The position numbers and the translations under genes were made by a program. Below are positions 2,362 through 63,931 of a stretch of 64,000 bases of DNA, in pieces (within the stretch, counting starts at the first letter, position 1; each line of letters opens with the position of its first letter). Where the stretch lies: sequence record MT708547.1. One strand, written 5' to 3'. The notes under the pieces are model-generated. The model was not told the DNA's origin. It did no database searches and was given only the letters and a program-made list of their open reading frames with translations.

Positions 2362-5022
2362 TTACTGACATGCCTCAAGACGGCGTGCCATAAACTCGGC
2401 ACGTCTTGTTGTTTGACCATACCATGCAGAGTTGCGAATGTGTGCCGCCGCCAGGCGATAGTTTCCCTGTGCCATAGCACCAAGCATACCCGTAAATTGT
2501 TGTACGCCCCCTTTACCCATCTGGAATACCATCTCGACTAGTACAAGTTGAGCCATATATGGTGTTTTCATCTTATAAGATGCATAGATAGAACTTGCAT
2601 CGTTGATTGCCTTTGTACTATCACGAACCAACATTGCATCAGCTTGTTCTTCAGTAATACCTGAACTGAAGTTTTCACCACGTAATACTAGGTGTCCATA
2701 ACCAATAGTTGGGAATCCTCTACTATCAGTATAAGTCCAGAATTTATCATTTCTAAAGTACCCTTTTGCTTGTTGATATTGTTTAGTACCTTCAAACTCT
2801 TTGAGTTCTGGCATTAATGTAGAATCACCTGGTTTGATTTGCCAATCCACCGCAGTTTTATCTACTGTACCAATATTCATTTCTTGTGGGGAGTAATTAA
2901 CCACTGTACTGCTTTTTGATGTTCTTGGTCGTCTAACCGGAACATGACGAGACCCACGTTGTGCATAACCAGAACCAATTGTTTGTATCTTGGTACTAAC
3001 AACCAGTTCATTACTATCATTACCAGACACCACTACTGTGTTAGATGATGTTTCTTTGGTAGCTTTACCTTGTATTAGTGTTTTATTTGCACATTCTGAA
3101 CCCGTACCAGTTTGGGTAGCATAGAATAGACCAGGATCTACTGTACCACTAAAACCATATAAATTGGCTGAATCGACGCGAATTTCAAATTTCAAAATAC
3201 CACTTGCAGTACCAATTTCTTGTCCTTTTTGTACTACATCTTTACTATACAATGAAGTTTTCAAACCATAAAATACTGATTTATACCCAGAATTATGTAC
3301 AATATACACTGCATTATTATATATACCAACTGTACCGGCATCAGGTGCAACTACAGTAGAATTACATTGTATTTCCCAGCCATTATGATCTGTTGTACTT
3401 CCTTTATTGTCAGTTATATTTTTACCCCAATACCCGTACTGACGAATAATACCATTACATGGCATTAACATGTGAAGACCTTCATATGTTTGGGAATAAC
3501 CATTCATACCAGTATCAGTCATTAAATCTTGTGTCTGTACTTGAGATGTTTCTGGGGCGTATGAGATGAACTGTACGGCCTCCTGTTGTTGAGCCTGTAC
3601 CAACTGTGGCTGGACGTCATTCGCAGGTTGTGGATGTACTGGTGCCGTAGTTGAACCACTTCCTGAACCATTGTAACCTGTATCTACGGTACTACCATGA
3701 TTTGATGCATCCTGCCAGTTTGAAATATTATGAATATGTTCATTAAGTCCAGCATTTGGTGTTTTAAAGTCCGGTGCCATAAATTCAGCAGTACCCTTAT
3801 TACCTGAAGCATCAACTGTAAGATTCTGCCCACCACCACTGATATTAGTGGATGAATCACCGATGATGTTAGCAGTTGAACCTTTCATGGAAACATTACT
3901 ACCAGCAGTCACATCAGTACTACTACCGCTTTGTAAACGTAAAGAAGCAGCCGTCACCAATCGTAAATCTGCACCACTATTGATAACTACTTGTCCTTCT
4001 ATTTTAGAATCCAATGAACCAAGTAATTCAAGTTTAGTATTACCACTAATACGAGCATTAAGATCCTGTCCAGTTTCTATATTACATGATCTACCAGCAA
4101 CCATATTAATATCCTGACCAGCACGAATGTTAATATTTTTATCGCAGTGAATATTAATATCTCCATCACCGGTAAATGATATACGAGCAGTACCATCACG
4201 ATTGATTAATAAAATATCACCAGTTGCCTCAGATAACATCAACTGAGCACCACTACGAGTACGCAAAACAATACCTTCATTGGTTCTTGCTCCCACCCTG
4301 GTATCATTTACTGGGTTGTTGAATTGTGTATCCTGATAAGTATCTGGATCATCATCCCATGAAGGAACATTAAGTTCATCATCGGTATATCCATCATCTA
4401 GTACAAAACTATTACCCCTTGGTGTACTCATACCATATACTGTACTAATCATTTGTCTGGTACTACTTCTGTTAGCTACACCAGCTTCTTTGTCGTATAA
4501 AAGGTTTTGTTTTTTTAAACCTTCAACGATAGGAACATTGACATATTTTTCATTTTGATCAGTACTGATGGTATTTCTGTCATAATCGGTAACTGGTAAT
4601 GGAGAATCTGTACCACTATATTGTGATGTAGTGGAAGTTGCCATACCTGGAACCATTGTGTTCATTCGTTGTTCGTATATACAACCAATCCAGTAAGCTT
4701 CATGTGATCTACCCTGAATGAATATAACAATTACTGGACAGCCTACATCGGGAGGTACCGCCCAGAATCCATAACCTTTTGGATACTGACCGTATGCATC
4801 AGCACTCGGTACACCTGGGGTTTTACCTGCAAATGGAGACATATAAGAACATTCAATCCATGATTTCTTATCGTCTCGTTCACTTTGTGAACCCTGAACC
4901 CATACTTTAATTTTACCACTCATAGTAGGATCTCGGTTGTCCATAACAATCGCTACCTGTGGATAAGCTGGGTCAAAACGACCCAACTGTTCTTTTGCAT
5001 ACTGTTTACTTGTATCTACCAT
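2362..5022 (-). CDS. gp5: Baseplate central spike / tail lysozyme, gp5-like: OB fold, beta-helix, HxH tip, degenerate M23, C-terminal lysozyme
   Basis: N-terminal AIVMDNRDPTMSGKIKVWV...GFWAVPPDVGCPVIVIF (gp5/VgrG OB fold), Val/Gly/Asn beta-helix repeats, GLNEHIH, M23-like segment, C-terminal TIGYGHL lysozyme. Confidence 0.85.
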   Translation of the reverse strand: MVDTSKQYAKEQLGRFDPAYPQVAIVMDNRDPTMSGKIKVWVQGSQSERDDKKSWIECSYMSPFAGKTPGVPSADAYGQYPKGYGFWAVPPDVGCPVIVIFIQGRSHEAYWIGCIYEQRMNTMVPGMATSTTSQYSGTDSPLPVTDYDRNTISTDQNEKYVNVPIVEGLKKQNLLYDKEAGVANRSSTRQMISTVYGMSTPRGNSFVLDDGYTDDELNVPSWDDDPDTYQDTQFNNPVNDTRVGARTNEGIVLRTRSGAQLMLSEATGDILLINRDGTARISFTGDGDINIHCDKNINIRAGQDINMVAGRSCNIETGQDLNARISGNTKLELLGSLDSKIEGQVVINSGADLRLVTAASLRLQSGSSTDVTAGSNVSMKGSTANIIGDSSTNISGGGQNLTVDASGNKGTAEFMAPDFKTPNAGLNEHIHNISNWQDASNHGSTVDTGYNGSGSGSTTAPVHPQPANDVQPQLVQAQQQEAVQFISYAPETSQVQTQDLMTDTGMNGYSQTYEGLHMLMPCNGIIRQYGYWGKNITDNKGSTTDHNGWEIQCNSTVVAPDAGTVGIYNNAVYIVHNSGYKSVFYGLKTSLYSKDVVQKGQEIGTASGILKFEIRVDSANLYGFSGTVDPGLFYATQTGTGSECANKTLIQGKATKETSSNTVVVSGNDSNELVVSTKIQTIGSGYAQRGSRHVPVRRPRTSKSSTVVNYSPQEMNIGTVDKTAVDWQIKPGDSTLMPELKEFEGTKQYQQAKGYFRNDKFWTYTDSRGFPTIGYGHLVLRGENFSSGITEEQADAMLVRDSTKAINDASSIYASYKMKTPYMAQLVLVEMVFQMGKGGVQQFTGMLGAMAQGNYRLAAAHIRNSAWYGQTTRRAEFMARRLEACQ

Positions 5023-5033
5023 TATTATTTCCT

Positions 5034-7367
5034 TTAATTGGTATCAGAATTAGAATTTGATGTAGAATCTGAACGTTTTAATGCACGAACTACTAATGCT
5101 GCCTGAAGTTGTTGTGTAAATGAACCGCCATTAGAGAACGTACTAACTACTTTATTAACTCTATAAAAAGAACTATTAAAAATTGTTGGGGTACTTACAT
5201 CCAAAATACCGGTATTATCATTAATAGAAACAACTGGTTTAATATTAAGTAAAAGATATGCTTCAGTATCCAGATAGTTAGCATAATAAAAATCATCAAC
5301 ATCCAATGATATTTCTTGTCCATCCTGAACAATTTGTTTAATGTATTTTAAAAAAGAATAATCACTCCATCCCAACCAGTAAGGATCTCCAACAACTTTC
5401 ATGTCAAGATTCATTAGAAAAGGGCGAACATAATAATTATCACGCATGTTACGCCTAATCATTTCTTCTGAACTACTATTATCATTAACGGAAGCACTTG
5501 TGGTAGTGTAGTTATTCTCTGCTTCAGTAGGAACTGCGTAAATTAAATTATCACGAGTGGTAATATTACCAGTATCGCTTCCAGTACCACTGTGCTCAGA
5601 TGAAACGTTGTCATTGTAATCTTCTACGTATTCTCGGTTAACTTGAACTTTGAAGTTATTAAGTTCATCCTGTTCTTCTTGTGCTCCAACTTTTTGTAAT
5701 GGAATAAGTGATTCATTAACTTTTTTAACGAATTGTTTTTGTTCATCTGTTAATACAGTACCAAGTTTTTCTTTTGTTTTTAAATCATAAGCAACTTCCC
5801 ATGCATCCGGTAGTGTTTTGTACTGAACACCGTCCAGAATAAACGGAGTACTGGCATGAGTACCACCAATATTTTTAGTGTCTTGTATTGGTGTGGGGTT
5901 ACGTGTTGTAGCAACAAAAAACTGTTGATCGAATTTTAAATCTAAATTTAAAATTTCCTGGTTAAGACCCGTAAAATGATAATTATAAGTTTTGGCTTTT
6001 ATTTTTGTTTTGTTATCACTTGGATCTATATATTTCTTAGCCTCATTAAAAAATGTTTCAAAATTAAATCTTTCTTTTTCCAAATCTTTCTCATGAACAA
6101 TATCACCGAGTTTATATGGTAAAATATTAAAAATAACTTTATATACAGTAGTATTTCGATATGGATCAAACCCCACATATTCCTGTACTGGAATGATATT
6201 AACAAATTGACGAACACTTTGTACATCTGCTGGATTACCACAGTTATCAAGTACATCATCGATTATTCTTGAAACTGGAGTACTGGCATTCCATGACAAA
6301 TACTTTGAACCTTGTTGACCTGTACTTGTCTTACCTACTTCGGAACTTTGTTTAGAATCATAATTGATATATAAATCTTTAAGAGAAGGAGTGACTCTTA
6401 ATTCAAAGAATTTTTGATCAGAAAGTTCACTAAACAATGGGACAAGATATCCATATTGTCTCATTGACATTTCATTTAATTTATCTTCTAAATCTGCACA
6501 TAATTCGTCAAAATATGCAGCAGTGCAGTTATATTGTTCTTTTAATGTCCATGAATTATTATCAACTAAACTTCTTGTGTTAGCCACTAATTGCATATTG
6601 TATTTCATTACGCTACCAGTTTGAGAAGCCTGTGCCAGTACTTTAATCATACGCACTGACCATTTTCTGGTAATATCAGGAATAACTGTTGGTGCTCCAT
6701 CTTTATATCCAATAAATTTTAATTCGAGAATAAGAGGTACATCACCAAATTTCTTATAGCCAAGTTTGTTGCTTAATACAATTAATGTATCATATAAACT
6801 CATACTATTATTTTCAGTAACAGAAATTTCATATGTATTAGAACTATAACAAGTGGTTAAACCTGGAGAAGCTGGAACTGCGTTAGTAATTTTAACATCA
6901 GTAATACTATAATTAGAGGTAACACCACTTTCAGCAATAATATATTCTTGTGATTCCCAGTTTGGCTCTTTGTTAAACATTTTGAAATCATCCGGTGATA
7001 ATGCATAAAGGGAAAAATGCCATGTGTAATTATCATACTGTAATAGAACATTTTCATAATTAACTACATAGTCATTAAAATCTTTTCCATAAAATACACC
7101 ATCTAATGGTCTATCTGTGCCATTATTTTCTGGTTGTGGGTTCGCCGCAAATTTGTTATTACTAATAGCACTAACATCATTTTTAAAAGAATTTACTTTA
7201 TTTTGTAATATAGAAGAAATGTCTTTTGTAGCACTACTTTCGGATGTTGTAGTACTTGTTGAGTTTGATACACTGCTTGTAGTACTACTTGATGCTGTTT
7301 TAGCTTGTTCTACATCATCAGCAAATGTTTGTGCTTGTTTTGCTAGATTACTTAAATTGAATGCCAT
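5034..7367 (-). CDS. Baseplate hub-like structural protein (gp27-like position)
   Basis: 777 aa between gp53-like and gp5-like genes; C-terminal MKVVGDPYWLG...YRVNKVVSTFSNGGSFTQQL is typical of hub proteins. Confidence 0.55.
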   Translation of the reverse strand: MAFNLSNLAKQAQTFADDVEQAKTASSSTTSSVSNSTSTTTSESSATKDISSILQNKVNSFKNDVSAISNNKFAANPQPENNGTDRPLDGVFYGKDFNDYVVNYENVLLQYDNYTWHFSLYALSPDDFKMFNKEPNWESQEYIIAESGVTSNYSITDVKITNAVPASPGLTTCYSSNTYEISVTENNSMSLYDTLIVLSNKLGYKKFGDVPLILELKFIGYKDGAPTVIPDITRKWSVRMIKVLAQASQTGSVMKYNMQLVANTRSLVDNNSWTLKEQYNCTAAYFDELCADLEDKLNEMSMRQYGYLVPLFSELSDQKFFELRVTPSLKDLYINYDSKQSSEVGKTSTGQQGSKYLSWNASTPVSRIIDDVLDNCGNPADVQSVRQFVNIIPVQEYVGFDPYRNTTVYKVIFNILPYKLGDIVHEKDLEKERFNFETFFNEAKKYIDPSDNKTKIKAKTYNYHFTGLNQEILNLDLKFDQQFFVATTRNPTPIQDTKNIGGTHASTPFILDGVQYKTLPDAWEVAYDLKTKEKLGTVLTDEQKQFVKKVNESLIPLQKVGAQEEQDELNNFKVQVNREYVEDYNDNVSSEHSGTGSDTGNITTRDNLIYAVPTEAENNYTTTSASVNDNSSSEEMIRRNMRDNYYVRPFLMNLDMKVVGDPYWLGWSDYSFLKYIKQIVQDGQEISLDVDDFYYANYLDTEAYLLLNIKPVVSINDNTGILDVSTPTIFNSSFYRVNKVVSTFSNGGSFTQQLQAALVVRALKRSDSTSNSNSDTN

Positions 7368-7376
7368 AATAACCTC

Positions 7377-7703
7377 TTATTGGACGTTTCTCGAAGTCCC
7401 AAGATACGTTTGAATTCTTTGTGGTGTGGGTACTTTAATAACTAAACCACTTTTAAAATTATAAATTGGATCTTCACCTAATAAATCTGGATTAAGAAGT
7501 GCAAAAATATAATACAAACGTTCATTGCCGTATAATTCATATGATAATCTCCACGGCTGTTCATCGTATTTGGCAGGAATTTCGTAATCCTGATCACTAT
7601 CCGCCGCCACCATATCTCTTGGTAAATTATAATCCAGATACCATGTCTTTTCAGTCTTTGCATATGGAGAAAATTGGCTTGGACTTGCATTAGAATTAGA
7701 CAT
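7377..7703 (-). CDS. gp53: Baseplate wedge protein, gp53/LysM (tail protein X)-like
   Basis: YEIPAKYDEQPWRLSYELYGNERLYYIFALLNPD...GLVIKVP pattern. Confidence 0.7.
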   Translation of the reverse strand: MSNSNASPSQFSPYAKTEKTWYLDYNLPRDMVAADSDQDYEIPAKYDEQPWRLSYELYGNERLYYIFALLNPDLLGEDPIYNFKSGLVIKVPTPQRIQTYLGTSRNVQ

Positions 7704-8434
7704 TAAATAAATCCTCCTTTGCGTAATAAGTCTCCACGCTTAAATGAATTAAGATTAAAATTTTTGGTAACATAATCCGATGTAGGTTGTTCTTCTAATT
7801 GTATAGTTACAGGGACTTTGTGTGGAACCCATACTTCGTTTTGTTGATTCATATAACCATTACTTCTTAATTGATCAAAAAAAGTTCTGGTATCCGCATC
7901 ACTTAAATTAAATGTAGTAGTGCTACTATCTACTGGAACCTGAATATAATCAACATCGTTGGTTAAAGAAAAATTATAACTTTTTAAAATAACAGGAATA
8001 TCATTATATACATATCTTCCATAAGCACTTAGTAGTAAAATCGGTGGAGGTGCACCAGCCACCGCATAATCATTATTACTGCTCATAGCAGCCTGTCTAC
8101 CAAAATCCATCAAAGATACACTTCTTATGAAATGCATACATGCTAAAGTATACAGTGCTTCTGTTGGTGTATTACTAACGAACTCACCTTGAATATTAAA
8201 AATAGTATTACTCGTATTTTTATAATTATTATAATTTGAATTTGAATGTACAGGTGATTGTGTTTCATAAACTACTGAACGTTGTTCAGTGATAGTTGGG
8301 GTAACATTCCATACTAAACCATTAGAACTTCTAAGAAAGGATAGTAACGTTGGTGTGGAAGCATCTCCATAATCACCGTATACATAATTCGCACCCGCAT
8401 CCTTTGGTCTTAATCTTACACGGCGGTCAATCAT
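7703..8434 (-). CDS. Baseplate/tail-tube initiator-like protein (gp48/gp54-like)
   Basis: Tube-fold-like motifs (GAPPPILLLSAYGRYVYNDIPVILKSYNFSL); first gene of the baseplate operon; late promoter TATAAATA at 8463..8470 (-). Confidence 0.55.
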   Translation of the reverse strand: MIDRRVRLRPKDAGANYVYGDYGDASTPTLLSFLRSSNGLVWNVTPTITEQRSVVYETQSPVHSNSNYNNYKNTSNTIFNIQGEFVSNTPTEALYTLACMHFIRSVSLMDFGRQAAMSSNNDYAVAGAPPPILLLSAYGRYVYNDIPVILKSYNFSLTNDVDYIQVPVDSSTTTFNLSDADTRTFFDQLRSNGYMNQQNEVWVPHKVPVTIQLEEQPTSDYVTKNFNLNSFKRGDLLRKGGFI

Positions 8435-8462
8435 TTTTATTTCTCCATTAGGACATTTATAA

Positions 8463-8470
8463 TATTTATA
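8463..8470 (-). promoter_or_regulatory. T4-type late promoter TATAAATA (baseplate operon)
   Basis: Exact consensus about 30 nt upstream of 8434. Confidence 0.65.
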
Positions 8471-8471
8471 T

Positions 8472-8501
8472 TTGAATAAAAACTATTTTTTGTACTATAA
8501 T
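8472..8501 (+). promoter_or_regulatory. TTGAAT-N18-TATAAT promoter (gp55/47/46 operon)
   Basis: Member of the conserved promoter class listed in findings. Confidence 0.7.
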
Positions 8502-8551
8502 ATGTACAATGATCCATATTATGGACAACGTGCAATCAAAAGGATTTGTAA

Positions 8552-9430
8552 ATGACACGCCCACGTAGAAAAAAATATCTCAATAATGCAGATCTATTGA
8601 GAGAAATTCAAAAAAGCAAAATGACATATTGTTCTGTAATAGATCCTATATACAATATGTATGATTTCATTGTTTTTGATGAATCAGAAATCGATGAAGA
8701 GATTCTACAAAAAGCAAAAACTGCAAGAATCAAACGTCTAAATAATGAAATCCTCGAAAATACAAGGAATGTTCTGAATTGTGGAACTAAAAAGGCTCGT
8801 GAACATTGCATTGAACAGGATTTATTCTTAAAAGATGTACCAGATGATGAAGTTGTTATTAGAGTAATCACAAATGAACACATTCCAGAAGGAACACGTA
8901 CAAATTTCGAAGCATTTAAGCAATATATTATCAGTACTGATGGTGAATTGATTGAAGTTGCTAGAAGTCACTGGAAAGGTGATTTTGAAACCGGAGAATT
9001 CATTGTTAATGGTGGTAAGTTAACTAATGAGCTTGGTAAAATGTTCATTAAGCTGGTTGAAGAGATTTCACATAAAGCTAATTTTAGAAATTATACATAC
9101 TTAGATGAAATGCAAGGTGAAGCACGAATTCAGTTGGTAAAAAATGCTCTACTTTTCAAAGAAAGTATGTTGTACAAAAAAGATAAACCTACTAATCAAC
9201 TAAATCCATTTTCTTATTATACAAGTTTCGTAACTAATTCGTTTCGTTCTGTTCTTAATAGTGAAAAAACTGTTCGTAATATCCGAGATGATTTATTGGA
9301 AATCAACGGTTTCACTCCATCACATACACGTCAATTGGAAATTGAAGTACAAATGATTGAACGAAAGAAAGAAGAAGAACAGGAACAAGAAGAAGAGAAA
9401 AATATCGATGAAAACCGACATTTTATTTGA
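8552..9430 (+). CDS. gp55: Late-transcription sigma factor, gp55-like
   Basis: YLNNADLL N-terminus; NFRNYTYLDEM and NPFSYYT motifs match T4 gp55; upstream of gp47/gp46 as in T4. Confidence 0.8.
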   Translation: MTRPRRKKYLNNADLLREIQKSKMTYCSVIDPIYNMYDFIVFDESEIDEEILQKAKTARIKRLNNEILENTRNVLNCGTKKAREHCIEQDLFLKDVPDDEVVIRVITNEHIPEGTRTNFEAFKQYIISTDGELIEVARSHWKGDFETGEFIVNGGKLTNELGKMFIKLVEEISHKANFRNYTYLDEMQGEARIQLVKNALLFKESMLYKKDKPTNQLNPFSYYTSFVTNSFRSVLNSEKTVRNIRDDLLEINGFTPSHTRQLEIEVQMIERKKEEEQEQEEEKNIDENRHFI

Positions 9431-10448: not shown

Positions 10449-10457
10449 GGAAATAAA

Positions 10458-12602: not shown

Positions 12603-12633
12603 AAAAAGGGGAGCATATTAGCTCCCCTTTTTT
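12601..12633. terminator. Bidirectional rho-independent terminator
   Basis: AAAGGGGAGC-ATATTA-GCTCCCCTTT between convergent genes. Confidence 0.8.
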
Positions 12634-14140: not shown

Positions 14141-14265
14141 GATATAATCTCTAATATTATATATCTAATAAATTTATTTACTTCAATAAATACCTATGTA
14201 AATAATCTTTCTGTATAATGCATAATTCAATACATAATTTCTTGATACGTTGGGTACAGAATAAC

Positions 14266-14303: not shown

Positions 14304-14310
14304 TCTGATT

Positions 14311-50490: not shown

Positions 50491-50493
50491 AAT

Positions 50494-52847: not shown

Positions 52848-52849
52848 AT

Positions 52850-52879
52850 TTGAACAAAAATACCTTTTAGTGATAGAAT
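52850..52879 (+). promoter_or_regulatory. TTGAAC-N18-TAGAAT promoter (primase/helicase)
   Basis: Conserved promoter class; implies the true primase start is ATG 52906. Confidence 0.65.
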
Positions 52880-52905
52880 GTTTTTATCAAAAGAAGGAAA
52901 ACGAG

Positions 52906-53964: not shown

Positions 53965-53978
53965 AATAAAGGAATATA

Positions 53979-55547: not shown

Positions 55548-55558
55548 GAATAATGTGA

Positions 55559-55828
55559 ATGGACGCAAAAAACCAAAATCTATTAGATAGTATTTTTGAA
55601 CACACATCCGAAAAAAGATCAATACAGCATTTTAGTAATAGAGCAGATCACGCGATTAACTCTGTTATTAATTTACTTGAATATATAGAAACTGAATTTG
55701 ATGCAGACGACGCTGAGGATTTAAAAAAGCGTTTATTTCTTAGTATAAAGAATAGAGACTATAAAAAGTTTCAAAAAGGATTGGAGAATATTGCACTCGA
55801 TGAATCCAGAAAGAATAAGGATAATTGA
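55559..55828 (+). CDS. Hypothetical protein
   Basis: 89-aa ORF after the helicase gene. Confidence 0.6.
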   Translation: MDAKNQNLLDSIFEHTSEKRSIQHFSNRADHAINSVINLLEYIETEFDADDAEDLKKRLFLSIKNRDYKKFQKGLENIALDESRKNKDN

Positions 55829-57456
55829 TGATTTTTGACAAGTCCAAATTTGAAAAATTAACCAAACCACGCAAACTGAAATATATTCAGGAAAATGACT
55901 TTTTTGGATTCAATACGAAAAATGCAGTGATGGTATTGTATTGTATAGAAAATGGTTTAACGGATGTTGTATATGCACCATGTGGGGCTGAATGTAAAAT
56001 AACATCAACTAAACCATCCAAGTACTGTAATAGTTATAAAAACAGAAAGGAAGAAACATGTCCTTTGTGTCATAATTATTATAAAAATACAATGCAAGAG
56101 AAGTACAAAGAAAGTTGTACCAAAAAATATGGTGTAGAAAATCCAATGAAAAATGCTGAAATTAGGGAAATCTATAAACAGAATTTCATTGATAAAACAG
56201 GATATACAAATCCATTGTGCACAGGTACCGATTCAAGAACAAAAAGAGATCAAACTTGTATTGTATTATTTGGTTCGGTATCTTCACAAAAAGACCATAC
56301 TGTTAGGGATAAAACCATAAAAACAAGTACAGAAAAGTTTGGTACTGAACATCCTATGAAAAATAAAAATATTTCCACTAAAGCTGGAAATAACTTGAGT
56401 TTAGTTCTTAATAAAAAGAAAACAAAAAGGATCTTAGAAAATTTATCCGATGGTATTACATTCATCGATGATGAAAAACTGAAATTCAATCAAGAATATG
56501 AATTTCGTTGTGATACATGTAATAATATTTTTAAACACCATATATGGAATCTTGGAGCTAAAAAAATAAGTTGTCCTATTTGTTTTCCCAGGAATAACAA
56601 TTCAAGTATGCAAGAAAATGAAATTAGAGGATATATTGAAAGTTTTGGATTAAAAACAATTAGTACTAAAAATATTATACATCCTTATGAAATTGATATT
56701 TATATTCCTGAATTAAAAATAGGATTTGAATATAATGGTAGCTACTGGCACAGCACTAAATTTGTTGATAAAAATTATCATTTGATGAAGCTTGAACTGG
56801 CAGAAAAATGTAATGTTCATTTGATTAATATTCATGAAGTTGATTATCAAAACAATAAAGAAGTAATATTATCTAGAATTAAAAATGTTTTAGGTTTTTC
56901 TGAATCTACATATGCCCGTTCTTGTACTATAAAAGAAGTTGGTTCAAAAGAAGAGAAGGAATTTCTTAATAAAAATCATTTACAAGGTTATGTTAATAGT
57001 AAACTGTGTTATGGATTATATCATGATGATGTACTAATGGCTGTAATGTCTTTTGGTAAAACTCGATATGATAAGAATGATGATGGTGTATATGAATTAC
57101 TAAGATATTGTTCATCTGGTACTGTAATCGGTGGAGCATCGAGATTACTAAAACATTTTGAAAAATACAATAAACCAAAACGACTAATTTCATATGCATC
57201 AAGAGACTGGACAAGTATTAATAATAATTTATATAAAACGCTTGGATTTGAATTTGTGAAAAGTACTAAACCTAGTTATTTTTATGAAAAGAATAATACC
57301 AAATTCAGTAGATATCAATGTACTTTGAAAAAATTATATAAAAACGACCCTTCACTTTTACCTAATTTAACAGAAGATGATATAACTATTGGTTTGTATA
57401 AGTTTAATAAAATATACACTACTGGGAATTTGAAATATGAAAAAAACTATAAATGA
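55825..57456 (+). CDS. Hef-like homing endonuclease (PD-(D/E)XK/DUF559-type core + GNAT-like C-terminus)
   Basis: KYGVENP repeats; EIDIYIPELKIGFEYNGSYWHS; C-terminal YELLRYC...GGASRLL...LISYA...LYKTLGF. Confidence 0.75.
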   Translation: MMIFDKSKFEKLTKPRKLKYIQENDFFGFNTKNAVMVLYCIENGLTDVVYAPCGAECKITSTKPSKYCNSYKNRKEETCPLCHNYYKNTMQEKYKESCTKKYGVENPMKNAEIREIYKQNFIDKTGYTNPLCTGTDSRTKRDQTCIVLFGSVSSQKDHTVRDKTIKTSTEKFGTEHPMKNKNISTKAGNNLSLVLNKKKTKRILENLSDGITFIDDEKLKFNQEYEFRCDTCNNIFKHHIWNLGAKKISCPICFPRNNNSSMQENEIRGYIESFGLKTISTKNIIHPYEIDIYIPELKIGFEYNGSYWHSTKFVDKNYHLMKLELAEKCNVHLINIHEVDYQNNKEVILSRIKNVLGFSESTYARSCTIKEVGSKEEKEFLNKNHLQGYVNSKLCYGLYHDDVLMAVMSFGKTRYDKNDDGVYELLRYCSSGTVIGGASRLLKHFEKYNKPKRLISYASRDWTSINNNLYKTLGFEFVKSTKPSYFYEKNNTKFSRYQCTLKKLYKNDPSLLPNLTEDDITIGLYKFNKIYTTGNLKYEKNYK

Positions 57457-57592
57457 AAATGCCAGTTCTGGAAGTACATCATCTGGATCTATTGCTTCCA
57501 GTACCAACGGATTACATTATCCGCTAGTCACCAGACTTCCCAAGACTAATTTCTTTGGAATGAAAGAATATAAAAAGAAGGATAAAAAATGA
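57437..57592 (+). CDS. Small 51-aa protein (not in ORF track), probable head-associated peptide
   Basis: MKKTINENASSGSTSSGSIASSTNGLHYPLVTRLPKTNFFGMKEYKKKDKK*; stop overlaps the next start (ATGA); motif resembles the gp23 segment ESATAGATTAGNIAS. Confidence 0.7.
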   Translation: MKKTINENASSGSTSSGSIASSTNGLHYPLVTRLPKTNFFGMKEYKKKDKK

Positions 57593-57981
57593 AACCATAT
57601 ACTTTCTATACAATCAATACAGTTGTTGATATTGGTGATGGTAGTACTCCTACTATATCAAATGGAAAGTTCACTGGTGCTATGAATTTATCAAGGCTGG
57701 TAGAAACAATTACTATACATGATTATCCTATGATGGTAAGTATTGTAAAAACTGAAGTAGATTTATCAAAAGATAGTAATGCTGAATTTTACAATTTACC
57801 ATCTGTGTGGGGAAAATGTGTTGTGAGTACTTTTAAGTTCGCATTAACAAATGATGTGACATTGAAAATTAATGGTGTTCCATTGGTATTGCCTACTGTA
57901 GTTAATAATACCAGAATTACTAAATTCCAGACAATGAATACTAACAGGAATATCAGTATTATTAAGCAGACTTTTTATTAA
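57589..57981 (+). CDS. Hypothetical protein
   Basis: 130 aa, AAGGA RBS. Confidence 0.6.
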   Translation: MKPYTFYTINTVVDIGDGSTPTISNGKFTGAMNLSRLVETITIHDYPMMVSIVKTEVDLSKDSNAEFYNLPSVWGKCVVSTFKFALTNDVTLKINGVPLVLPTVVNNTRITKFQTMNTNRNISIIKQTFY

Positions 57982-57990
57982 AATAAATAA

Positions 57991-58992
57991 TTGAAAGATC
58001 TTTTTACAAAAGGAATTAAAATGGATATTCAACAAACATCACAAGAATTACAAAAATTTGCTGATTCTCAGGGAATGAATATTGATGTTTCTACTGTACT
58101 CGATAATATGGATGCTGGTGATTTCGTGGAATTGAATTCGGCTATCGACTCTAACAATAATCAAGAAATTTTTAAAATTCTTCAAAAATATAAAGCACGT
58201 ATGAGTGAAAGTTTTGAATATTTTAGTCCAACATATGTACTTAAATACGTAACCGAAAATTCAAAACTAAAAGAAATTGATAATTATAGTATTAAAGAAT
58301 TAAAAGAAGCGTATTCAAAATTCAGTACATATGGTGATATTTCAGAATTTAGTACTCAGGAATTAAAAGCATTAGTGTATGAAGATATAACACAGAATGC
58401 TACACAGCTTAATGCGTTAAAAACTAGTAATATTGCACAACAAAATCTACAACAGCAACAACAACAAATTAATCCACAGACACAGGCTAAAGTTAAACAA
58501 GCAGAATTGCAAAAAGGTACGGGTAATATGAAAGTATCTGTTCCTGGTCAACAATCTGGTACAGATGAAATTGAACCCCTTGTTGGTATTGATGTTGGAC
58601 AAACACCACAACAGACATTGGTTGTTACTAAAAGTGGTTCTAAACCAAATCAGGTTAATATATTTGGTCTAGATGACGTCACCCCAGTTCAGGAATCAAG
58701 AAAACTAATGGATGACATTGATAAGATCTGCACAGAAGAAAAATCTGTACAAGAGATTAATGCAGAAACTAAAAATGTTGCTCCGCCAGCACCTGAACAA
58801 AGTGGAACTCCATCGCCAGTTACTTATACTGCTCCTGGTATGGGTGAGTTTATTCATTCAGTACAGGACGTTCCATTTGAAGATGATTTCAGTGGAGAAG
58901 AAAGCCCATTAGGAAATTCTAAATTTGAACAGAATGATGAAATTGTTAACGATATAATTGATTTATGCAATCGAATGGATAATAGAAAATGA
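57991..58992 (+). CDS. Hypothetical Gln-rich protein (probable start ATG 58021), possible head protein
   Basis: AATAAATA upstream; several (L/I/V)xE-S motifs. Confidence 0.6.
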   Translation: MKDLFTKGIKMDIQQTSQELQKFADSQGMNIDVSTVLDNMDAGDFVELNSAIDSNNNQEIFKILQKYKARMSESFEYFSPTYVLKYVTENSKLKEIDNYSIKELKEAYSKFSTYGDISEFSTQELKALVYEDITQNATQLNALKTSNIAQQNLQQQQQQINPQTQAKVKQAELQKGTGNMKVSVPGQQSGTDEIEPLVGIDVGQTPQQTLVVTKSGSKPNQVNIFGLDDVTPVQESRKLMDDIDKICTEEKSVQEINAETKNVAPPAPEQSGTPSPVTYTAPGMGEFIHSVQDVPFEDDFSGEESPLGNSKFEQNDEIVNDIIDLCNRMDNRK

Positions 58993-59183
58993 GATCTATA
59001 AAAACCGACAATGGTTATAGTATTATCCTTAGTAATGAAGAGTACTCATTATATAGAAAAATTAAAGCTAGAAAAAAAATTCACGAAGAATCTCTTCCTG
59101 AATATTATCAAGAACTCGCCAATAAACTGGTATCAAGGGGCGTTCTTGATAAAACTGAAGATAATATATATACAGTAAAATAA
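58989..59183 (+). CDS. Small hypothetical protein
   Basis: 64 aa, coupled; LANKLVSRGVL is winged-helix-like. Confidence 0.55.
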   Translation: MRSIKTDNGYSIILSNEEYSLYRKIKARKKIHEESLPEYYQELANKLVSRGVLDKTEDNIYTVK

Positions 59184-59207
59184 TACAATGTAATTAAAGG
59201 AAGTTAT

Positions 59208-59861
59208 ATGAGTTATTATTCTGATGATTATGAACAAAATAAGAAGGCTAAATCAGAAATTTCTGATTTACTTACTGACTTGTATGATATTGGTTTTTAT
59301 GATAAAAATGATATCCCACCACCGGTAAGTACAGCACCTGATTATGGTTATGATTATATTACAGAAGGTGTACAAGGTACTTATTCACTGGATGAAAATG
59401 GTATTCCAGTTAATGTAGTACAACCCACTATCCCAGAACAGTACTATACTGAACCTGTTATTCAAAAACCAAAAAATACTAAAAAATGGGATTTAGTTGA
59501 AGATCACTATCCAGGTACTAAAAGTACTAAAGTCTATAGTATTAAATGTAATTCAAATGACCAAATTATTATGAATAACATTTTAATGCACGAAGCCGCT
59601 TTAACTTTAGTAAATCTTTTAAATGAAGGTAGAATGTTAACTGATCCAAAAATTCTTGGTATAATCAGCAGTGGTATTCAATTTACTTCAGTTATGAATG
59701 AGGTCATAAAAGTATCAAAAGAACGTCTTGTAGTACTAAATGAAGCTCGTTATGATGATGCAAAAGAATTGGATGTAAAAATTGCCGAAAAGAAAAATGA
59801 AGCATATAAACTGAAAAAACGTGTACTGGATTTTCTAAAAACTGAAGGCTACATTAAATAG
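59208..59861 (+). CDS. Hypothetical protein
   Basis: 217 aa, AAGGA RBS. Confidence 0.6.
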   Translation: MSYYSDDYEQNKKAKSEISDLLTDLYDIGFYDKNDIPPPVSTAPDYGYDYITEGVQGTYSLDENGIPVNVVQPTIPEQYYTEPVIQKPKNTKKWDLVEDHYPGTKSTKVYSIKCNSNDQIIMNNILMHEAALTLVNLLNEGRMLTDPKILGIISSGIQFTSVMNEVIKVSKERLVVLNEARYDDAKELDVKIAEKKNEAYKLKKRVLDFLKTEGYIK

Positions 59862-59878
59862 TACTTCAAGGGAATGAA

Positions 59879-61612
59879 ATGAAAAAATATCTGAAAAATT
59901 TAGATACAGAAACAGAAAATCTATTTAATGAAATTCGTTCATTACTAAGTAACAAAAATAGTAAATCATGGCATACCTCAATAAATGCTTCTGGAAGGGA
60001 GCATTTAAAAAACGCGGTACTTAGAGTCTATCCAAGTAGTGATTTTTTACTATCAGAAGCATTAAAACTGATTATCAATCAAGAAGAACCACCGTATGCA
60101 GTATGTGGTAGAAAATGTAAGTATTTTAATGGTCAGTATGATAGATATTGTTCATTGGGTGTCAAACCCAATAAAAACACTTATTGTGAGAAGTGCAATA
60201 AACTCTGGCGAGAAAAGAAAAACAAATCCACAAAAGAAAACTGTCTAAATCAGTACAATGTTGAACACCCTTTTCAGCGAAATGATGTGAAAACAAAAGT
60301 ACATGAAACTAAAATACGAAAATACGGTACTAATTATAATAAAATAATTTCAAACAAATCATTCAGTACTTATTATAATAAAACTGGATATTCATGTCCA
60401 TTGAGTAATCCAGATATACAACAAAAAATTAAAGAAACTAATATTAAAAATTATGGATATGAAAATCCCGGTTCATCTCCATTAATTGTACAAAAAAGAA
60501 AAAATACCCAGAAGAAATTATATGGTCATGAACATTCTATGCAGAATGGTGATATAAAACTAAAGGTATTGATTAAATCTGCCACACAGAGAATGGATAG
60601 TATAAATTCAAAACTTGAATTTACTAATTTTATTCCTTTGTTTGATATTAGTGATTTAATTGGTTTGGATACATATAACAAAATGCCATACTGGTGTAAT
60701 ACACATGGTTTATTTTATTCATGTAGTAATTATAAAATTATATGTAATGAATGCACTCCCGTTCATATAAGCACACAACACAAAGAGATATTAAATTTTA
60801 TAGAAAATCTTGGTATTGAATGTGTAACGAATACACGCTCTGTTTTAAAAAGTACTATGGAATTGGATATTTTTATACCTGACTTGAATGTTGCAATAGA
60901 AATTAATGGTATGTACTGGCATAGTACTGAATACAAAGAACGACTGTATCATCAAAACAAAATGTTGGAATGTAAAGAACATGGCATTCACTTAATACAG
61001 ATATGGGAAGATGAATGGAATACCAAACAAGATTTGGTTAAATTTCGTTTGATGAATGTATTAAAATGCTCCAGTACTATATATGCAAGAAAATGTAAAA
61101 TAAAAGAAATCAATAAAAAAGAATGTGATAATTTTATTAATACATACCATATCCAAGGTTCTAGTTCATCATCTATTAGAATTGGTTTATATTACGAAAA
61201 TGAATTATATGCAGTTATGACATTTGGAAAATCCAGATTTGATAAAACTGTTCAGTATGAATTGATACGATATTGTTCAAAAAGTACAGTCGTTGGCGGT
61301 GCATCTAAATTATTAAAGTACTTTGAGAAGAAATACAAACCAGTGTCGTTGATTTCTTATGCAGATGCGTGTTGGAGTACTGGTGATTTATATATTAAAC
61401 TTGGTTTTACATATAATGGATTAACTGAACCTGGTTATTTTTATTACAAATCAAGTACTGGTAGAATTTCAAGGCATCAATGTCAAAAGAAAAAACTAGT
61501 CAATCAGGGATATGATGAAAATTTATCAGAATATCAAATATGTACCACTGTACTTAAATATAACAAAATATTTGATTGTGGTAATTTTAAATTCACTAAA
61601 TATTACATATAA
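59879..61612 (+). CDS. Hef-like homing endonuclease (paralogue of 55825..57456)
   Basis: ELDIFIPDLNVAIEINGMYWHS; C-terminal YELIRYC...GGASKLL...LISYAD...LYIKLGF. Confidence 0.75.
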   Translation: MKKYLKNLDTETENLFNEIRSLLSNKNSKSWHTSINASGREHLKNAVLRVYPSSDFLLSEALKLIINQEEPPYAVCGRKCKYFNGQYDRYCSLGVKPNKNTYCEKCNKLWREKKNKSTKENCLNQYNVEHPFQRNDVKTKVHETKIRKYGTNYNKIISNKSFSTYYNKTGYSCPLSNPDIQQKIKETNIKNYGYENPGSSPLIVQKRKNTQKKLYGHEHSMQNGDIKLKVLIKSATQRMDSINSKLEFTNFIPLFDISDLIGLDTYNKMPYWCNTHGLFYSCSNYKIICNECTPVHISTQHKEILNFIENLGIECVTNTRSVLKSTMELDIFIPDLNVAIEINGMYWHSTEYKERLYHQNKMLECKEHGIHLIQIWEDEWNTKQDLVKFRLMNVLKCSSTIYARKCKIKEINKKECDNFINTYHIQGSSSSSIRIGLYYENELYAVMTFGKSRFDKTVQYELIRYCSKSTVVGGASKLLKYFEKKYKPVSLISYADACWSTGDLYIKLGFTYNGLTEPGYFYYKSSTGRISRHQCQKKKLVNQGYDENLSEYQICTTVLKYNKIFDCGNFKFTKYYI

Positions 61613-61631
61613 CTTATAAGGAATATATAAA

Positions 61632-62255
61632 ATGTCTGACATTAAAAAAATCATGGAAGCTGAAAATCGTGTAGAAGCACTGAAGTTCATGCAGATTAAT
61701 GAAAGTAATATTGAAAAACTGGAAGTGGTTCTCGCAATCAAATCTGGTATTGCCGATAAACTACAACGTGCTTCTGAGCAGTTGATGAACTACAGCGTTG
61801 ACGTTCTCGGTCCAATTGTTGATCGTATTAAAGCAGAAGAAGGTATTGAAGTGGCCGAAGAATTTCAGTCCAGAGTTAAAAACATCCTTCAACATGCAGC
61901 AGATGTAGTTATGGATGCTAAAGACCAGATCACTAACGAAACTCTTAAACTTACTGGTGATGTAGCTGATAATCCAGATGTGGCTGATATCGGTATTGAT
62001 GATGATCTAACCGTTGATGAGGAAACCCCAACTTTTGATATGGAATCTGATGCTTCCTTTGATGATATTGAAGAACCTGTACCGGAAGATCGTGCAATGA
62101 AAGAATCTGTACAATATACCCAAGTTGGTATCAAAATGGAAAGTACTAAAGGTACTATTGGTACAAAATATTTCAGTACTCATAAAGAAGCTGAAAAATG
62201 GCTCAAAGAAAATGAATCTAAAGTCAAAAAAGTACTTGGGTTCGAGAAAAAATAA
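61632..62255 (+). CDS. Hypothetical acidic protein, possible head protein
   Basis: 207 aa, high-expression codons, IMEA/INES/MKES motifs. Confidence 0.6.
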   Translation: MSDIKKIMEAENRVEALKFMQINESNIEKLEVVLAIKSGIADKLQRASEQLMNYSVDVLGPIVDRIKAEEGIEVAEEFQSRVKNILQHAADVVMDAKDQITNETLKLTGDVADNPDVADIGIDDDLTVDEETPTFDMESDASFDDIEEPVPEDRAMKESVQYTQVGIKMESTKGTIGTKYFSTHKEAEKWLKENESKVKKVLGFEKK

Positions 62256-62263
62256 GGTTAATT

Positions 62264-62614
62264 ATGAAATTTCGTGATATTGTAAAAATCACAGAAGATG
62301 CACCACCAAAAGATATTCGCAATATGATCACCAGTATTGCATTATCACTAGTTGCATCTGGTAGGGAAGAGGTTGGTATTCAGTCATTGGTTAATGAAAT
62401 TAAGAAAAGGACTGGTATTGATGTTCCTTATAATGTGATGATGGATATTTTAAATTCGTTGCCATTTGTTCAGGATGCAAATTCTGATAGAGTACAATTT
62501 TCAGGAACTGATACCAGTACTGACTTTAAGCAACCTAATTCAGAAGAAAGTTCTGAACAAAAAGTACAAGATATGGCTGGTAAAGCAGCCACCGACAGTA
62601 TGAAATCACTATAA
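62264..62614 (+). CDS. Hypothetical protein, possible head protein
   Basis: 116 aa; N-terminal MKFRDIVKITEDA. Confidence 0.6.
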   Translation: MKFRDIVKITEDAPPKDIRNMITSIALSLVASGREEVGIQSLVNEIKKRTGIDVPYNVMMDILNSLPFVQDANSDRVQFSGTDTSTDFKQPNSEESSEQKVQDMAGKAATDSMKSL

Positions 62615-62619
62615 AATTT

Positions 62620-62649
62620 TTGAACAAAAAGACAAAAATAAGCTATAAT
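62620..62649 (+). promoter_or_regulatory. TTGAAC-N18-TATAAT promoter
   Basis: Conserved promoter class upstream of the exonuclease. Confidence 0.7.
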
Positions 62650-62666
62650 TATGGAGTAACAAGGGA

Positions 62667-63374
62667 ATGTTTGTTCCACCTATTATTAGCAGATATTCTT
62701 ATGTTGATTATAAAAGAATTGAAGGCGGCTCTCAGGGTCGCCTTTATTCTACCCCAACCGGAAATCTGCCATCGGTAACTACAATTCTAAGTGCCACATC
62801 CAATGATGAAGGATTGAAAAAATGGCGTGAATTTGTGGGAGAAGAAAAAGCCAATGCTATCACACTGGAAGCAACGACAATTGGTACCTTTATGCATGAA
62901 AATTTAGAAAATAGATTAAATTCTAAGCCAGATCATGAAGGTGGTATGCCAGTACGTGTATTAGCAAGAAAAATGGCTGATAAAATTCAAGAAGAAGCGT
63001 GGCCTAAAATTAATGAAGTATGGGGTCAGGAAGTACCACTGTACTATGAAGGTCTATGGGCTGGAACAACAGATTTGGTTGGAATTCATGACGGAATTCC
63101 AACCATCATGGATTACAAAAATTCTAGAAAAAAGAAAACATGGAATCATATTGAAAATTACCGTTTACAAATTGCCGCATATGCGTTGGCTCATAACTAT
63201 ATGTATGGAACTGATATACGACGTGGTGTAATATTTGTTTGTGTAAGAGAAGATCCTCAAAATTTACAATATCAGGAATTTATAATTGAAGGTGATGATT
63301 TTGATGAAGCCGTACAAATGTGGATTTCTAGAGTAGAGCAATATTATATAATGAATGGGCAAATTATAAATTAA
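62667..63374 (+). CDS. PD-(D/E)XK exonuclease (RecB/Cas4-like phage exonuclease)
   Basis: LPSVTTIL, GTFMHENLE, EVPLY, AGTTDLV, IMDYK, QIAAYALA motifs. Confidence 0.88.
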   Translation: MFVPPIISRYSYVDYKRIEGGSQGRLYSTPTGNLPSVTTILSATSNDEGLKKWREFVGEEKANAITLEATTIGTFMHENLENRLNSKPDHEGGMPVRVLARKMADKIQEEAWPKINEVWGQEVPLYYEGLWAGTTDLVGIHDGIPTIMDYKNSRKKKTWNHIENYRLQIAAYALAHNYMYGTDIRRGVIFVCVREDPQNLQYQEFIIEGDDFDEAVQMWISRVEQYYIMNGQIIN

Positions 63375-63394
63375 ATTAGCAAACTGGAGTAACA

Positions 63395-63931
63395 ATGAAA
63401 GACAACGTATACATTTATATTATTAAAGTACTGGAAGGTAAAGGTTACGATATCAATGAAGTAATCAAGAAAAGCGATAAAGAAATCAAATCTCTTCCTC
63501 TATCTCGTCAGATTATTGAGGGTATTATTTCTTATAAAGAAAAGGGTTCCCCAAAACTAGAAGAAATCGAAAAGGAAATCTTTGATAAGAGATATAACCC
63601 AGACGTGGAAGTAAAAACTTCAGATATTATCGAATATGTAAAAAACACCGATGAACAAAATGAAGTCCTGGATAATATTAAACAAGAACAACTTGAAGAA
63701 ATTCCTGATGATGTAATTGTAATTAAACATACTGCTCCGAACAAAGAAGATTTGGATATCATCAAAGATGCCCTTCAACAAAAAGAACTCCGTACAATTG
63801 CAAAATATGTTAAACACCTGAAAGACACCGTTCCTTCTGCTATTATGTCTGCTGTTGATAGTGTGACTATTAATGACCTAATTAATGCACGAATTGCAGA
63901 AGTAAAATCAGCAGAAGAAAAAACTAAATAA
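63395..63931 (+). CDS. Hypothetical protein
   Basis: 178 aa, GGAG RBS. Confidence 0.6.
   Translation: MKDNVYIYIIKVLEGKGYDINEVIKKSDKEIKSLPLSRQIIEGIISYKEKGSPKLEEIEKEIFDKRYNPDVEVKTSDIIEYVKNTDEQNEVLDNIKQEQLEEIPDDVIVIKHTAPNKEDLDIIKDALQQKELRTIAKYVKHLKDTVPSAIMSAVDSVTINDLINARIAEVKSAEEKTK

Follow-up and report, generated by a model that had tools for sequence, protein, structure and literature searches.

The palindrome AGTACT is strongly over-represented in a stretch of 64,000 nucleotides, here called the window, which is identical in sequence to positions 186001-250000 of Klebsiella phage Muenster (MT708547.1). Muenster is a RaK2-like jumbo myovirus of the genus Alcyoneusvirus with a genome of 346,937 bp, and it encodes structural, replication and recombination genes of T4 type. 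The excess is found throughout its genome and in related phages of Enterobacterales, and the same word stands at fixed places in the early promoters, which cluster in a 20,030-bp terminal repeat outside the window. Judging from sequence comparison, we give a probability of about 0.5 to the reading that AGTACT is recognised by a symmetric sequence-specific DNA-binding factor of the enterobacterial RaK2/121Q/GAP32/BF-type jumbo phages, most likely one that these phages encode themselves. What points to such a putative symmetric protein site is the combination of a palindromic core, graded flanks, helical phasing, placement in promoters, lower divergence there and restriction to one clade.

We counted 126 AGTACT sites in the window (about one per 500 bp), dispersed over 962..63432 with no strand assigned, against 21.6 expected from base composition; 27 of them are part of the octamer CAGTACTG, for which 0.57 copies are expected. 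The initial annotation had estimated roughly 120 sites against about 22, which is close to the exact figures; its range of 3900-63440 holds broadly but misses the sites at 962 and 1217, and its estimate of ~31% GC compares with a measured 32.6%. The sites lie in all three frames of the 69 annotated coding sequences (94.7% of the window) and in intergenic DNA, as had also been noticed: 73 read AGT-ACT (Ser-Thr), 36 read xxA-GTA-CTx (Val-Leu), 13 read xAG-TAC-Txx and four are non-coding or at a gene edge. Frames were assigned, and genes shuffled, with the coding coordinates of the record. AGTACT is the only 6-bp palindrome enriched in the window (5.8-fold; the runner-up reaches 2-fold), and 24 of the 64 such palindromes have no site at all, including CTTAAG (21.6 expected). 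Phages are known for purging short palindromes; this one purges them thoroughly, yet hoards AGTACT.

In an AT-rich genome, the excess might simply arise from codon usage, from the make-up of the proteins in amino acids or from biased dinucleotides: 58% of the window sites read AGT-ACT, where both codons are preferred ones, and a shuffle that keeps dinucleotides yields 86.5 of the 122 coding sites by itself. Nevertheless, the observed count exceeds every null. Dinucleotide-preserving shuffles of the window gave 14.5 ± 3.6 sites with a maximum of 23, and none out of 100 reached 126. Within the coding sequences (122 sites), shuffling synonymous codons per gene, which keeps the protein and its codon usage, gave 40.4 ± 5.5 sites (z = 14.8); a third-base shuffle that also preserves all dinucleotides, swapping only between codons that share their first two bases and the following base, gave 86.5 ± 5.3 (z = 6.7); and permutation of whole codons gave 24.1 ± 4.7 (z = 20.9). 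Intergenic DNA and both remaining frames moreover show an equal fold-excess (over the synonymous null, the frames of the window show 2.7-, 5.4- and 3.2-fold), and relatives of similar GC content lack it. These three kinds of shuffle reject a codon, dipeptide or dinucleotide artefact, and we regard such an origin as practically negligible. GTAC is insufficient as a cause as well: the window has 398 GTAC, which with background flanks predict ~45 AGTACT, and the excess grows outward from GTAC (z = 9.8) and AGTAC (z = 9.2) to the hexamer and the octamer. Since the counts exceed all shuffles and the prediction from GTAC, the excess is a DNA-level property that is explained neither by codon usage nor by dipeptides nor by GTAC, all of which the initial annotation had named as causes that would refute it. 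Its interpretation is supported in part, and its core, a pressure on the DNA word itself, stands.

The whole Muenster genome, joined from the seven pieces of its record, contains 949 AGTACT against 117 expected (8.1-fold), which is one per ~365 bp or 2.7 per kb, together with 237 copies of CAGTACTG (2.95 expected) and 2522 of GTAC (1011 expected); 17 other 6-bp palindromes are at zero. In the non-repeat open reading frames, 722 sites compare with 229.8 ± 13.8 under the synonymous null (z = 35.6). The half-site CAGTAC/GTACTG (969 versus 320, z = 40.7) heads the list of hexamers enriched in the genome under this null, with TCAGTA and TTCAGT next. AGTACT is thus a palindrome in excess genome-wide and in all frames beyond codon-aware expectation, as a word of HIP1 type is, and instead of being avoided as the ScaI restriction site it is enriched 8.1-fold.

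The ~950 ScaI sites are tolerated in a genome from which most other palindromes are purged, and three DNA-modifying activities are predicted in Muenster: a Dam-family methyltransferase, a C5 methyltransferase (MT708547.1 289449-290336) and a Mom-family DNA modification enzyme (258239-258823; Pfam Mom, E = 6.5e-37), whose gene adjoins that of a dihydrofolate reductase. AGTACT or GTAC might then be a site of phage DNA modification, with modified sites favoured or protected, as proposed for HIP1 and its methyltransferases. RaK2 DNA is reported to be cut only by methylation-insensitive enzymes, and bisulfite data report methylated CpG (PMC3622015). The entire C5 enzyme, however, aligns with the catalytic domain of mammalian DNMT3A/B (E = 3e-22), far better than with bacterial M.HaeIII/M.HhaI (E about 1e-6 to 1e-8); by this similarity it is DNMT3-like and its target is probably CpG, in agreement with the methylated CpG of RaK2; AGTACT contains no such dinucleotide. 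Enzymes of the Dam family act on GATC, and Mom of phage Mu targets S-A-S-N-Y, to which CAGTACTG does not conform. None of the three enzymes is predicted to target AGTACT, with the caveat that sequence does not give their specificity. Furthermore, protection would render a site neutral, giving neither an 8-fold enrichment nor placement in promoters. DNA of the related phage fEgEco12 is cut normally by ten restriction enzymes (PMC13070987), so the genomes of the clade are not globally hypermodified. We consider a modification site very unlikely, and the sequence-specific modification/repair cycle suggested in the initial annotation is likewise disfavoured by the Dam-family and DNMT3-like nature of the methyltransferases, and by the frequencies of neighbouring words given below. 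A search for a GTAC/AGTACT methyltransferase or DNA-binding protein elsewhere in the genome had also been suggested; methyltransferases are present, none of them predicted for AGTACT, and no reader was found.

The sequence around the core is graded. Genome-wide, T is found at -3 in ~50% of the sites, T at -2 in ~44% and C at -1 in 46-58%; G at -1 is almost absent (4-7% in Muenster) and is depleted to 4-10% in every genus sampled. These preferences are equal within and beyond the terminal repeat, and symmetric on both sides when the sites are oriented by transcription. All enriched genera have the AGTACT core and avoid G at -1, and the preference for C at -1 is strongest in Muenster and in the Escherichia virus TH47. 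The motif is a graded symmetric palindrome of 8-12 bp with the core AGTACT, (T)(T)C-AGTACT-G(A)(A), and TTCAGTACTGAA is found in 35 perfect copies in Muenster. Abutting half-sites (CAGT-N0-ACTG) occur 156 times where 17.9 are expected (z = 41), and no enrichment of half-sites spaced by 1-12 bases was seen in the same whole-genome test. A moderate enrichment is also seen for variants with a single mismatch at an outer position, which is how a site described by a weight matrix behaves. Being palindromic and symmetrically flanked, AGTACT shows nothing of the asymmetry and strand or orientation bias of a Chi-like word.

Beyond the repeat, coding DNA has 2.33 sites per kb and intergenic DNA 2.53 per kb, with a flat profile along genes. 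The gaps between sites are exponentially distributed, that is Poisson-like (coefficient of variation 0.93, Kolmogorov-Smirnov p = 0.12, largest gap as expected), and a regular spacing was rejected on this ground. Among close pairs, a spacing of 20 bp is found 24 times and one of 10 bp six times, with at most seven pairs for any other spacing up to 120 bp.

Most of the 20-bp pairs (21 out of 24) are in the terminal repeat, which contains 157 AGTACT (21- to 26-fold enriched), 102 of them intergenic; the right genome end is dense too. Here we observed ~22 promoters of the shape aaaAGTACTTGACa-N-ttcAGTACTG(t/gc)ATAAT, in which box 1 overlaps the upstream (5') edge of the -35 element and box 2, two helical turns away, fills the spacer and abuts TG-TATAAT. 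An independent promoter scan of the 20-kb repeat found 14 perfect (12/12) sigma70 consensus promoters, 13 on the + strand, and their -35 hexamer begins at box 1 + 5. The boxes thus have a fixed placement relative to -35 and -10 in many promoters and are helically phased, as operators are. AGTACT also centres perfect palindromes of 18-22 bp (GGGAATCAGTACTGATTCCC and variants) in the 5' leaders, between promoter and ribosome-binding site. The initial annotation had stated that no ordinary feature explains the word; this is so inside the window, but outside it AGTACT is a standard component of early promoters.

Between Muenster and RaK2, which differ by ~6.7% in the repeat region, 11 out of 343 intergenic AGTACT positions differ, compared with 223 out of 3403 other intergenic positions; intergenic boxes diverge half as fast as their surroundings. 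A footprint upstream of one orthologous early gene across genera was uninformative, the gene not always being promoter-proximal.

Boxes also cluster at both boundaries of the terminal repeat. At the right one (346796-346929 of the record), six boxes are found within 140 bp in 40-nt repeats, at spacings of 40, 40, 20, 10 and 10 bp, and at the left genome end boxes are found at 48 and 80. In the non-coding left end (775-1360), 4-6 copies of ATGATAATGATTCTCATTT are seen beside AGTACT boxes, a sequence that we take to resemble the Fur-box consensus GATAATGATAATCATTATC.

The clusters at the ends are suggestive of another idea, namely that AGTACT is acted on by a phage DNA enzyme instead of being read by a binding or regulatory protein. 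The enzyme could be a nicking or processing endonuclease, a DnaG-type primase or a T4-type topoisomerase II, and a bidirectional Chi-like signal and the terminase or end-formation machinery are further candidates; genes for a DnaG-type primase, a helicase, topoisomerase II, gp46/47, UvsX/Y/W and terminase are all present in Muenster. The uniform, Poisson-like distribution regardless of genes would suit such a target, a primase would find 5'-CTG on both strands of CAGTACTG, and a topoisomerase II could use GTAC as its 4-bp stagger. Graded flanks and helically phased pairs embedded in promoters are, however, typical of a binding protein; nicking at a palindrome would cause double-strand breaks, and the trinucleotides of primases require no 8-bp context. 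No sequence evidence ties the motif to any one of these enzymes, and we know of none that needs a site every 365 bp. An enzyme target seems rather unlikely.

The excess is shared by a clade of phages. TH47 (genus Asteriusvirus; ~65% nucleotide identity to Muenster in orthologs) has 909 AGTACT against 118 expected and 203 copies of CAGTACTG, with flanks as in Muenster and a dense early region where promoters mostly have AGTACTG fused to the -10 element. Samples of 21 kb from around the capsid gene show an excess of 6.1-fold in CBB and GAP32 (Mimasvirus), 4.8-fold in Serratia phage BF (Eneladusvirus), 4.7-fold in Salmonella phage SE_PL and 8.1-fold in XaC1. In the comparison with relatives that the initial annotation had proposed, the excess is common to all seven enterobacterial-type lineages sampled. 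No excess was found in Vibrio phage 2.275.O (0.6-fold), in PA5oct (0 versus 7.1) or in ~40 environmental relatives with 60-65% capsid identity. PA5oct, itself a related jumbo phage, with none of the 7.1 sites expected in 21 kb, shows the opposite behaviour, presumably avoidance. Some environmental relatives have other palindromes in excess (3- to 5-fold overall), e.g. CAGCTG in L049 and L063 (3- to 4-fold) and GGTACC in L070, with corrected p-values of about 0.003-0.008 under a null that is dinucleotide-aware and leaves codon usage aside. That each distant lineage favours its own palindrome is marginal after this null and Bonferroni correction, and we do not claim it.

A search of 2.9 million viral contigs with the 20-base two-box promoter pattern found 21 loci, 19 of them on contigs of the clade, including metagenomic relatives, where AGTACT is locally 9- to 27-fold enriched and GCGC is missing. 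In 596 Gb of bacterial genomes the pattern gave one chance-like match. The two-box architecture is confined to the enterobacterial RaK2/121Q/GAP32/BF-type clade, and its absence from bacterial genomes and unrelated phages means that no host regulon uses it.

This distribution bears on the idea that the phages recruit or titrate a conserved protein of their Enterobacterales hosts, e.g. a nucleoid-associated or division-control factor of SlmA-like specificity. All enriched phages infect Enterobacterales or are close kin of phages that do, and early promoters must rely on host factors alone at injection. The SlmA-binding sequence GTGAGTACTCAC has a centre identical to the AGTACT core, and the SlmA site is a 12-bp palindrome that needs G1, T2, a purine at position 3, A4 and G5 (PMC3020112). 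In the phage, however, position 3 is C in 46-58% of the sites and G in 4-7%, G at -1 is depleted in every genus, and only two out of 949 sites fit GTRAGTACTYAC, which excludes SlmA itself. The lack of the two-box promoter in bacteria and unrelated phages argues against a host protein in general, as does the under-representation of AGTACT in a 50-kb sample of E. coli K-12 (3 versus 11.6 expected, 0.06 per kb). We regard a host protein as unlikely.

The word is ~45 times denser in the phage than in this E. coli sample (50 kb, three sites), and for GCGC the relation is reversed: it occurs 6.8 times per kb in the sample, i.e. about every 150 bp, and not once in the 347 kb of Muenster (220 expected) or in TH47 (327 expected). 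GCGC is zero in every AGTACT-enriched relative sampled, and is of normal frequency in Vibrio phage 2.275.O, in PA5oct and in all but one of the environmental relatives. Because this co-occurrence is perfect, the data suggest that AGTACT excess and GCGC absence are linked, e.g. via a phage activity against GCGC in host DNA. One may go further and propose a two-word code that marks self versus host, with a phage-encoded reader that uses AGTACT density to direct early shut-off and genome-wide coating or protection, and a GCGC-directed activity destroying host DNA; we put this forward as a tentative extension that has the odds against it. If true, such a code would do by sequence what T4 does by modifying its bases.

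Comparison of 225 reciprocal-best pairs of orthologs between Muenster and TH47 (164 kb aligned) showed how the sites evolve. The aligned orthologs have 384 sites in Muenster and 363 in TH47, and 107 (28%) are at shared positions; the median hexamer shares 13% and AGTACT ranks 36th out of 882. Where Ser-Thr is kept in both phages (n = 128), it is encoded by AGT-ACT in 59% and 70% of the cases, compared with ~19% expected from codon usage, and joint use of AGT-ACT is near independence (61 observed versus 52.8 expected). Out of 217 in-frame sites of Muenster, 61 are shared, 15 differ synonymously and 141 (65%) have one or two other amino acids in TH47. The density of AGTACT is maintained while its individual positions turn over.

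The proteome is distorted accordingly, and in one direction only. Ser-Thr is raised 1.79-fold in Muenster and 1.53-fold in TH47, and Val-Leu 1.54- and 1.35-fold, whereas the reversed dipeptides are not: Thr-Ser is at 1.03 and 0.97, and Leu-Val at 0.92 and 0.96. In non-enriched relatives, the ratio of Ser-Thr to Thr-Ser is ~1.0. Because the dipeptide bias is directional and missing in those relatives, it is the DNA word that shapes the proteome rather than the proteome the word, which also speaks against codon or amino-acid bias as the origin of the excess. The pressure for AGTACT is strong enough to alter amino-acid sequences. AGTACT is ~7-fold enriched in core genes, in genes lacking a homolog in TH47 and in homing-endonuclease genes alike; the site-poor exception is a group of tail-fibre/depolymerase genes (98-110 kb of the record, 0.5-0.9 sites per kb), which the record annotates as similar to proteins of unrelated Klebsiella phages. 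Their poverty in sites would fit recent import followed by slow accumulation. AGTACT has the properties of a self-marking word, with a density above that of other DNA in the cell (the E. coli sample being small), positions that turn over and a distorted proteome.

The same observations could come from molecular drive, in which DNA transactions preferentially transmit or regenerate AGTACT alleles and the dispersed sites do not serve the phage. Parallels are the uptake bias that spreads DNA uptake sequences and the raising of CCWGG by Vsr in E. coli; candidate processes in Muenster are mismatch repair by five Vsr-like/EDxHD endonucleases, initiation of recombination-dependent replication and gene conversion. 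Drive would account for a density that is kept despite positional turnover, for joint use in orthologs near independence and for coding sites that are not conserved above background between close relatives. The equal density in core, accessory and homing-endonuclease genes, with fewer sites in the recently swapped tail-fibre genes, is what a time-dependent process would leave, and the phage encodes T4-type recombination machinery and, according to the record, five large EDxHD/Vsr-like endonucleases. Profile searches on the EDxHD genes returned DUF7487 only, and the Vsr-like label is that of the record.

Repair of the Vsr kind should nevertheless deplete the neighbours that differ by a transition, and they are not depleted: AGTATT/AATACT is at 0.92 of the synonymous null, AGTACC/GGTACT at 1.29 and AGTGCT/AGCACT at 1.42. 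The C5 methyltransferase is DNMT3-like and probably acts on CpG, which AGTACT lacks. An excess driven by Vsr/Dcm-type repair was rejected, with neither the depletion of neighbours nor a C5 enzyme on the enriched word paired with a Vsr-like nuclease. The size of the excess, 8-fold and enough to alter the proteome, also far exceeds the known effect of Vsr. Drive leaves the fixed placement of boxes in early promoters and the lower divergence there unexplained, and it would itself require a sequence-specific reader. We consider drive rather unlikely, and the most credible of the alternatives to a binding factor.

If AGTACT is the site of a binding factor, a dimeric protein would bind the boxes, and two dimers on one face of the DNA would bracket the -35 element of early promoters and control, probably shut off, early transcription. 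The natural candidate for this reader would be an early or injected phage protein, because early genes fire with host polymerase alone and then need to be shut off. The ~800 dispersed sites would be read by the same factor as the promoter boxes, which is the economical assumption because the flank preferences are shared. Their Poisson-like spacing, indifference to genes and positional turnover indicate that any function would be one of density and not of place. The ~950 sites could concentrate the protein on phage rather than host DNA, and AGTACT may serve as a sequence-based 'self' mark of an unmodified genome, for coating, compaction, protection or recruitment genome-wide; a sequence word would then take the role that base modification has in T4.

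Several points weigh against a dedicated binding factor. The sharing of positions with TH47 is close to independence, and coding sites of the early region differ between Muenster and RaK2 at eight out of 131 positions (6.1%), compared with a background of 6.8%; per-site selection is therefore weak. A transmission-bias process such as drive would yield the same pattern, and the boxes could aid recognition by RNA polymerase instead of binding a separate protein. The host density comes from a single 50-kb sample of E. coli with three sites. Pfam and PHROG scans of the conserved early proteins found no recognisable DNA-binding domain.

Two early proteins were considered as candidate readers. An H-NS-family protein is encoded in the terminal repeat (MT708547.1 5709-6209; Pfam Histone_HNS_N, which is the N-terminal oligomerisation domain, 25.5 bits for a cutoff of 24.5) and has an ortholog in the early region of TH47. 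It is detectable only in phages of Escherichia, Klebsiella and Salmonella (two enriched genera and related Salmonella phages), a range narrower than that of the enrichment, which makes it a weak candidate; it could be a mimic or antagonist of H-NS for a very AT-rich genome. An 89-residue protein, the best-conserved small basic early protein, is found in 70 records that match the enriched clade exactly, and its AlphaFold model is all-beta (predicted local distance difference test score 73) and resembles no known structure (best E = 0.6). The remaining conserved early proteins fall into families without a known function.

AGTACT can be compared with several known systems. HIP1 (GCGATCGC) of cyanobacteria is a short palindrome over-represented genome-wide in coding and non-coding DNA and in all frames, with an octamer extension; to our knowledge it has no agreed function. 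AGTACT is likewise genome-wide, in all frames and extended to an octamer, but it is another word, viral and clade-specific, with no evident cognate methyltransferase, and it is fixed in one class of promoters. The likeness to HIP1 pointed out in the initial annotation therefore holds for the genome-wide excess in all frames, and is an analogy only. The DNA uptake sequences and uptake signal sequences of Neisseria and Haemophilus are species-specific self words at ~1 per kb with inverted pairs in terminators, proteome distortion and a dedicated binding protein; they are non-palindromic and spread by uptake and recombination in competent bacteria. AGTACT resembles them in the pair within the hairpin at 14266-14301, in distorting the proteome and in keeping density over position, and differs in being palindromic, in a phage without an uptake step, and in its presence in promoters. 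The closest functional precedents are TF1 of SPO1 and p6 of phi29, abundant phage proteins that bind genome-wide, prefer and repress early promoters and discriminate phage DNA, and for which the clustering of early promoters in a long terminal repeat is a further likeness. TF1 recognises DNA with hydroxymethyluracil and p6 recognises DNA topology, whereas discrimination here would depend on a sequence word in apparently ordinary DNA, by a protein that is postulated. Chi (GCTGGTGG) and the Vsr/Dcm word CCWGG of E. coli are further words in excess that go with enzymes of recombination or repair; Chi has an asymmetric sequence and a strand orientation, and the depleted T-for-C neighbour left by Vsr is absent for AGTACT. 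The sites of the nucleoid-occlusion proteins SlmA (GTGAGTACTCAC) and Noc are palindromes dispersed over a replicon, that of SlmA having 12 bp, an AGTACT core and a dimeric helix-turn-helix protein (PMC3020112), but its flanks are incompatible (2/949), and the density in the phage is hundreds of times above the ~50 sites of an E. coli chromosome.

A few individual sites of the window deserve mention. Two copies of TTCAGTACTG stand in tandem at 12561..12580 (no strand), at the 3' end of a gene for a gp46-like recombination endonuclease, with their AGTACT sites 10 bp, or one helical turn, apart; a tandem near 12563 had been noted before. Between divergent genes, a hairpin like that of an intrinsic terminator is found on the + strand at 14266..14301, AAAATAGGTCAGTACT-GAAA-AGTACTGACCTATTTT followed by a T run, with AGTACT in each arm. 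This stem had also been recognised from the letters, and its folding supports it (-23.4 kcal/mol, z = -7.4; none out of 200 shuffles folds as well). At 22321..22335 (+ strand), 50 nt upstream of the start of the major capsid gene, CAGTACTG is fused to ATAAATA, the core of T4-type late promoters, and the box is placed relative to this -10-like element as in early promoters. Genome-wide, two out of 70 ATAAATA are fused to an AGTACT box, including the one at the capsid gene, so the fusion is no general feature of late promoters and was rejected as a rule. Two homing-endonuclease genes of the EDxHD type, both on the + strand, contain three (55828..57456) and seven (59879..61612) AGTACT, in line with an earlier remark that sites occur inside such genes.

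Other words also deviate from expectation. In the non-repeat open reading frames, the most depleted hexamer under the synonymous null is TAAATA/TATTTA (214 versus 574, z = -23), the T4-type late-promoter core, which looks like selection against spurious late promoters within genes; A6/T6 (z = -18) and AATATT come next, and GATGTC/GACATC (8 versus 68.6) and CAGCTG (1 versus 46) are avoided as well. The Chi octamer GCTGGTGG occurs 13 times on the + and three times on the - strand of Muenster (~0.8 expected on each), and the Chi-related hexamers CTGGTG, GCTGGT and TGGTGG are 4.6- to 6.5-fold enriched in the window, which may reflect GCT-GGT-GGT (Ala-Gly-Gly) codons.

Full-text searches of the literature by motif, promoter sequence and phage genus turned up no account of the AGTACT excess. 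In the RaK2 paper (PMC3622015), mentions of 'motif' and 'ScaI' are unrelated to AGTACT, and the word is absent from the papers on CBB and fEgEco12 (PMC13070987), the former describing only 'RpoD-like promoters preceded by an UP-like element'. Other functional words in excess are known (Chi, DNA uptake and uptake signal sequences, HIP1, SlmA/Noc sites); what is new is a hyper-abundant palindrome common to a clade of phages, which distorts their proteins and at the same time forms part of their early promoters.

About 70-100 sequenced jumbo phages of Klebsiella, E. coli, Salmonella, Cronobacter, Serratia, Yersinia, Erwinia and Pectobacterium load their genomes with this one palindrome, at a measurable cost in protein sequence, and build it into their early promoters as well. 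AGTACT excess together with zero GCGC makes a simple diagnostic signature for the clade, whose jumbo phages of Klebsiella and E. coli are candidate agents of phage therapy. The reader, if it exists, would provide a handle on the early-to-middle switch in T4-related phages with ordinary DNA, on the organisation and protection of a 350-kb genome, and on the discrimination of self from host.

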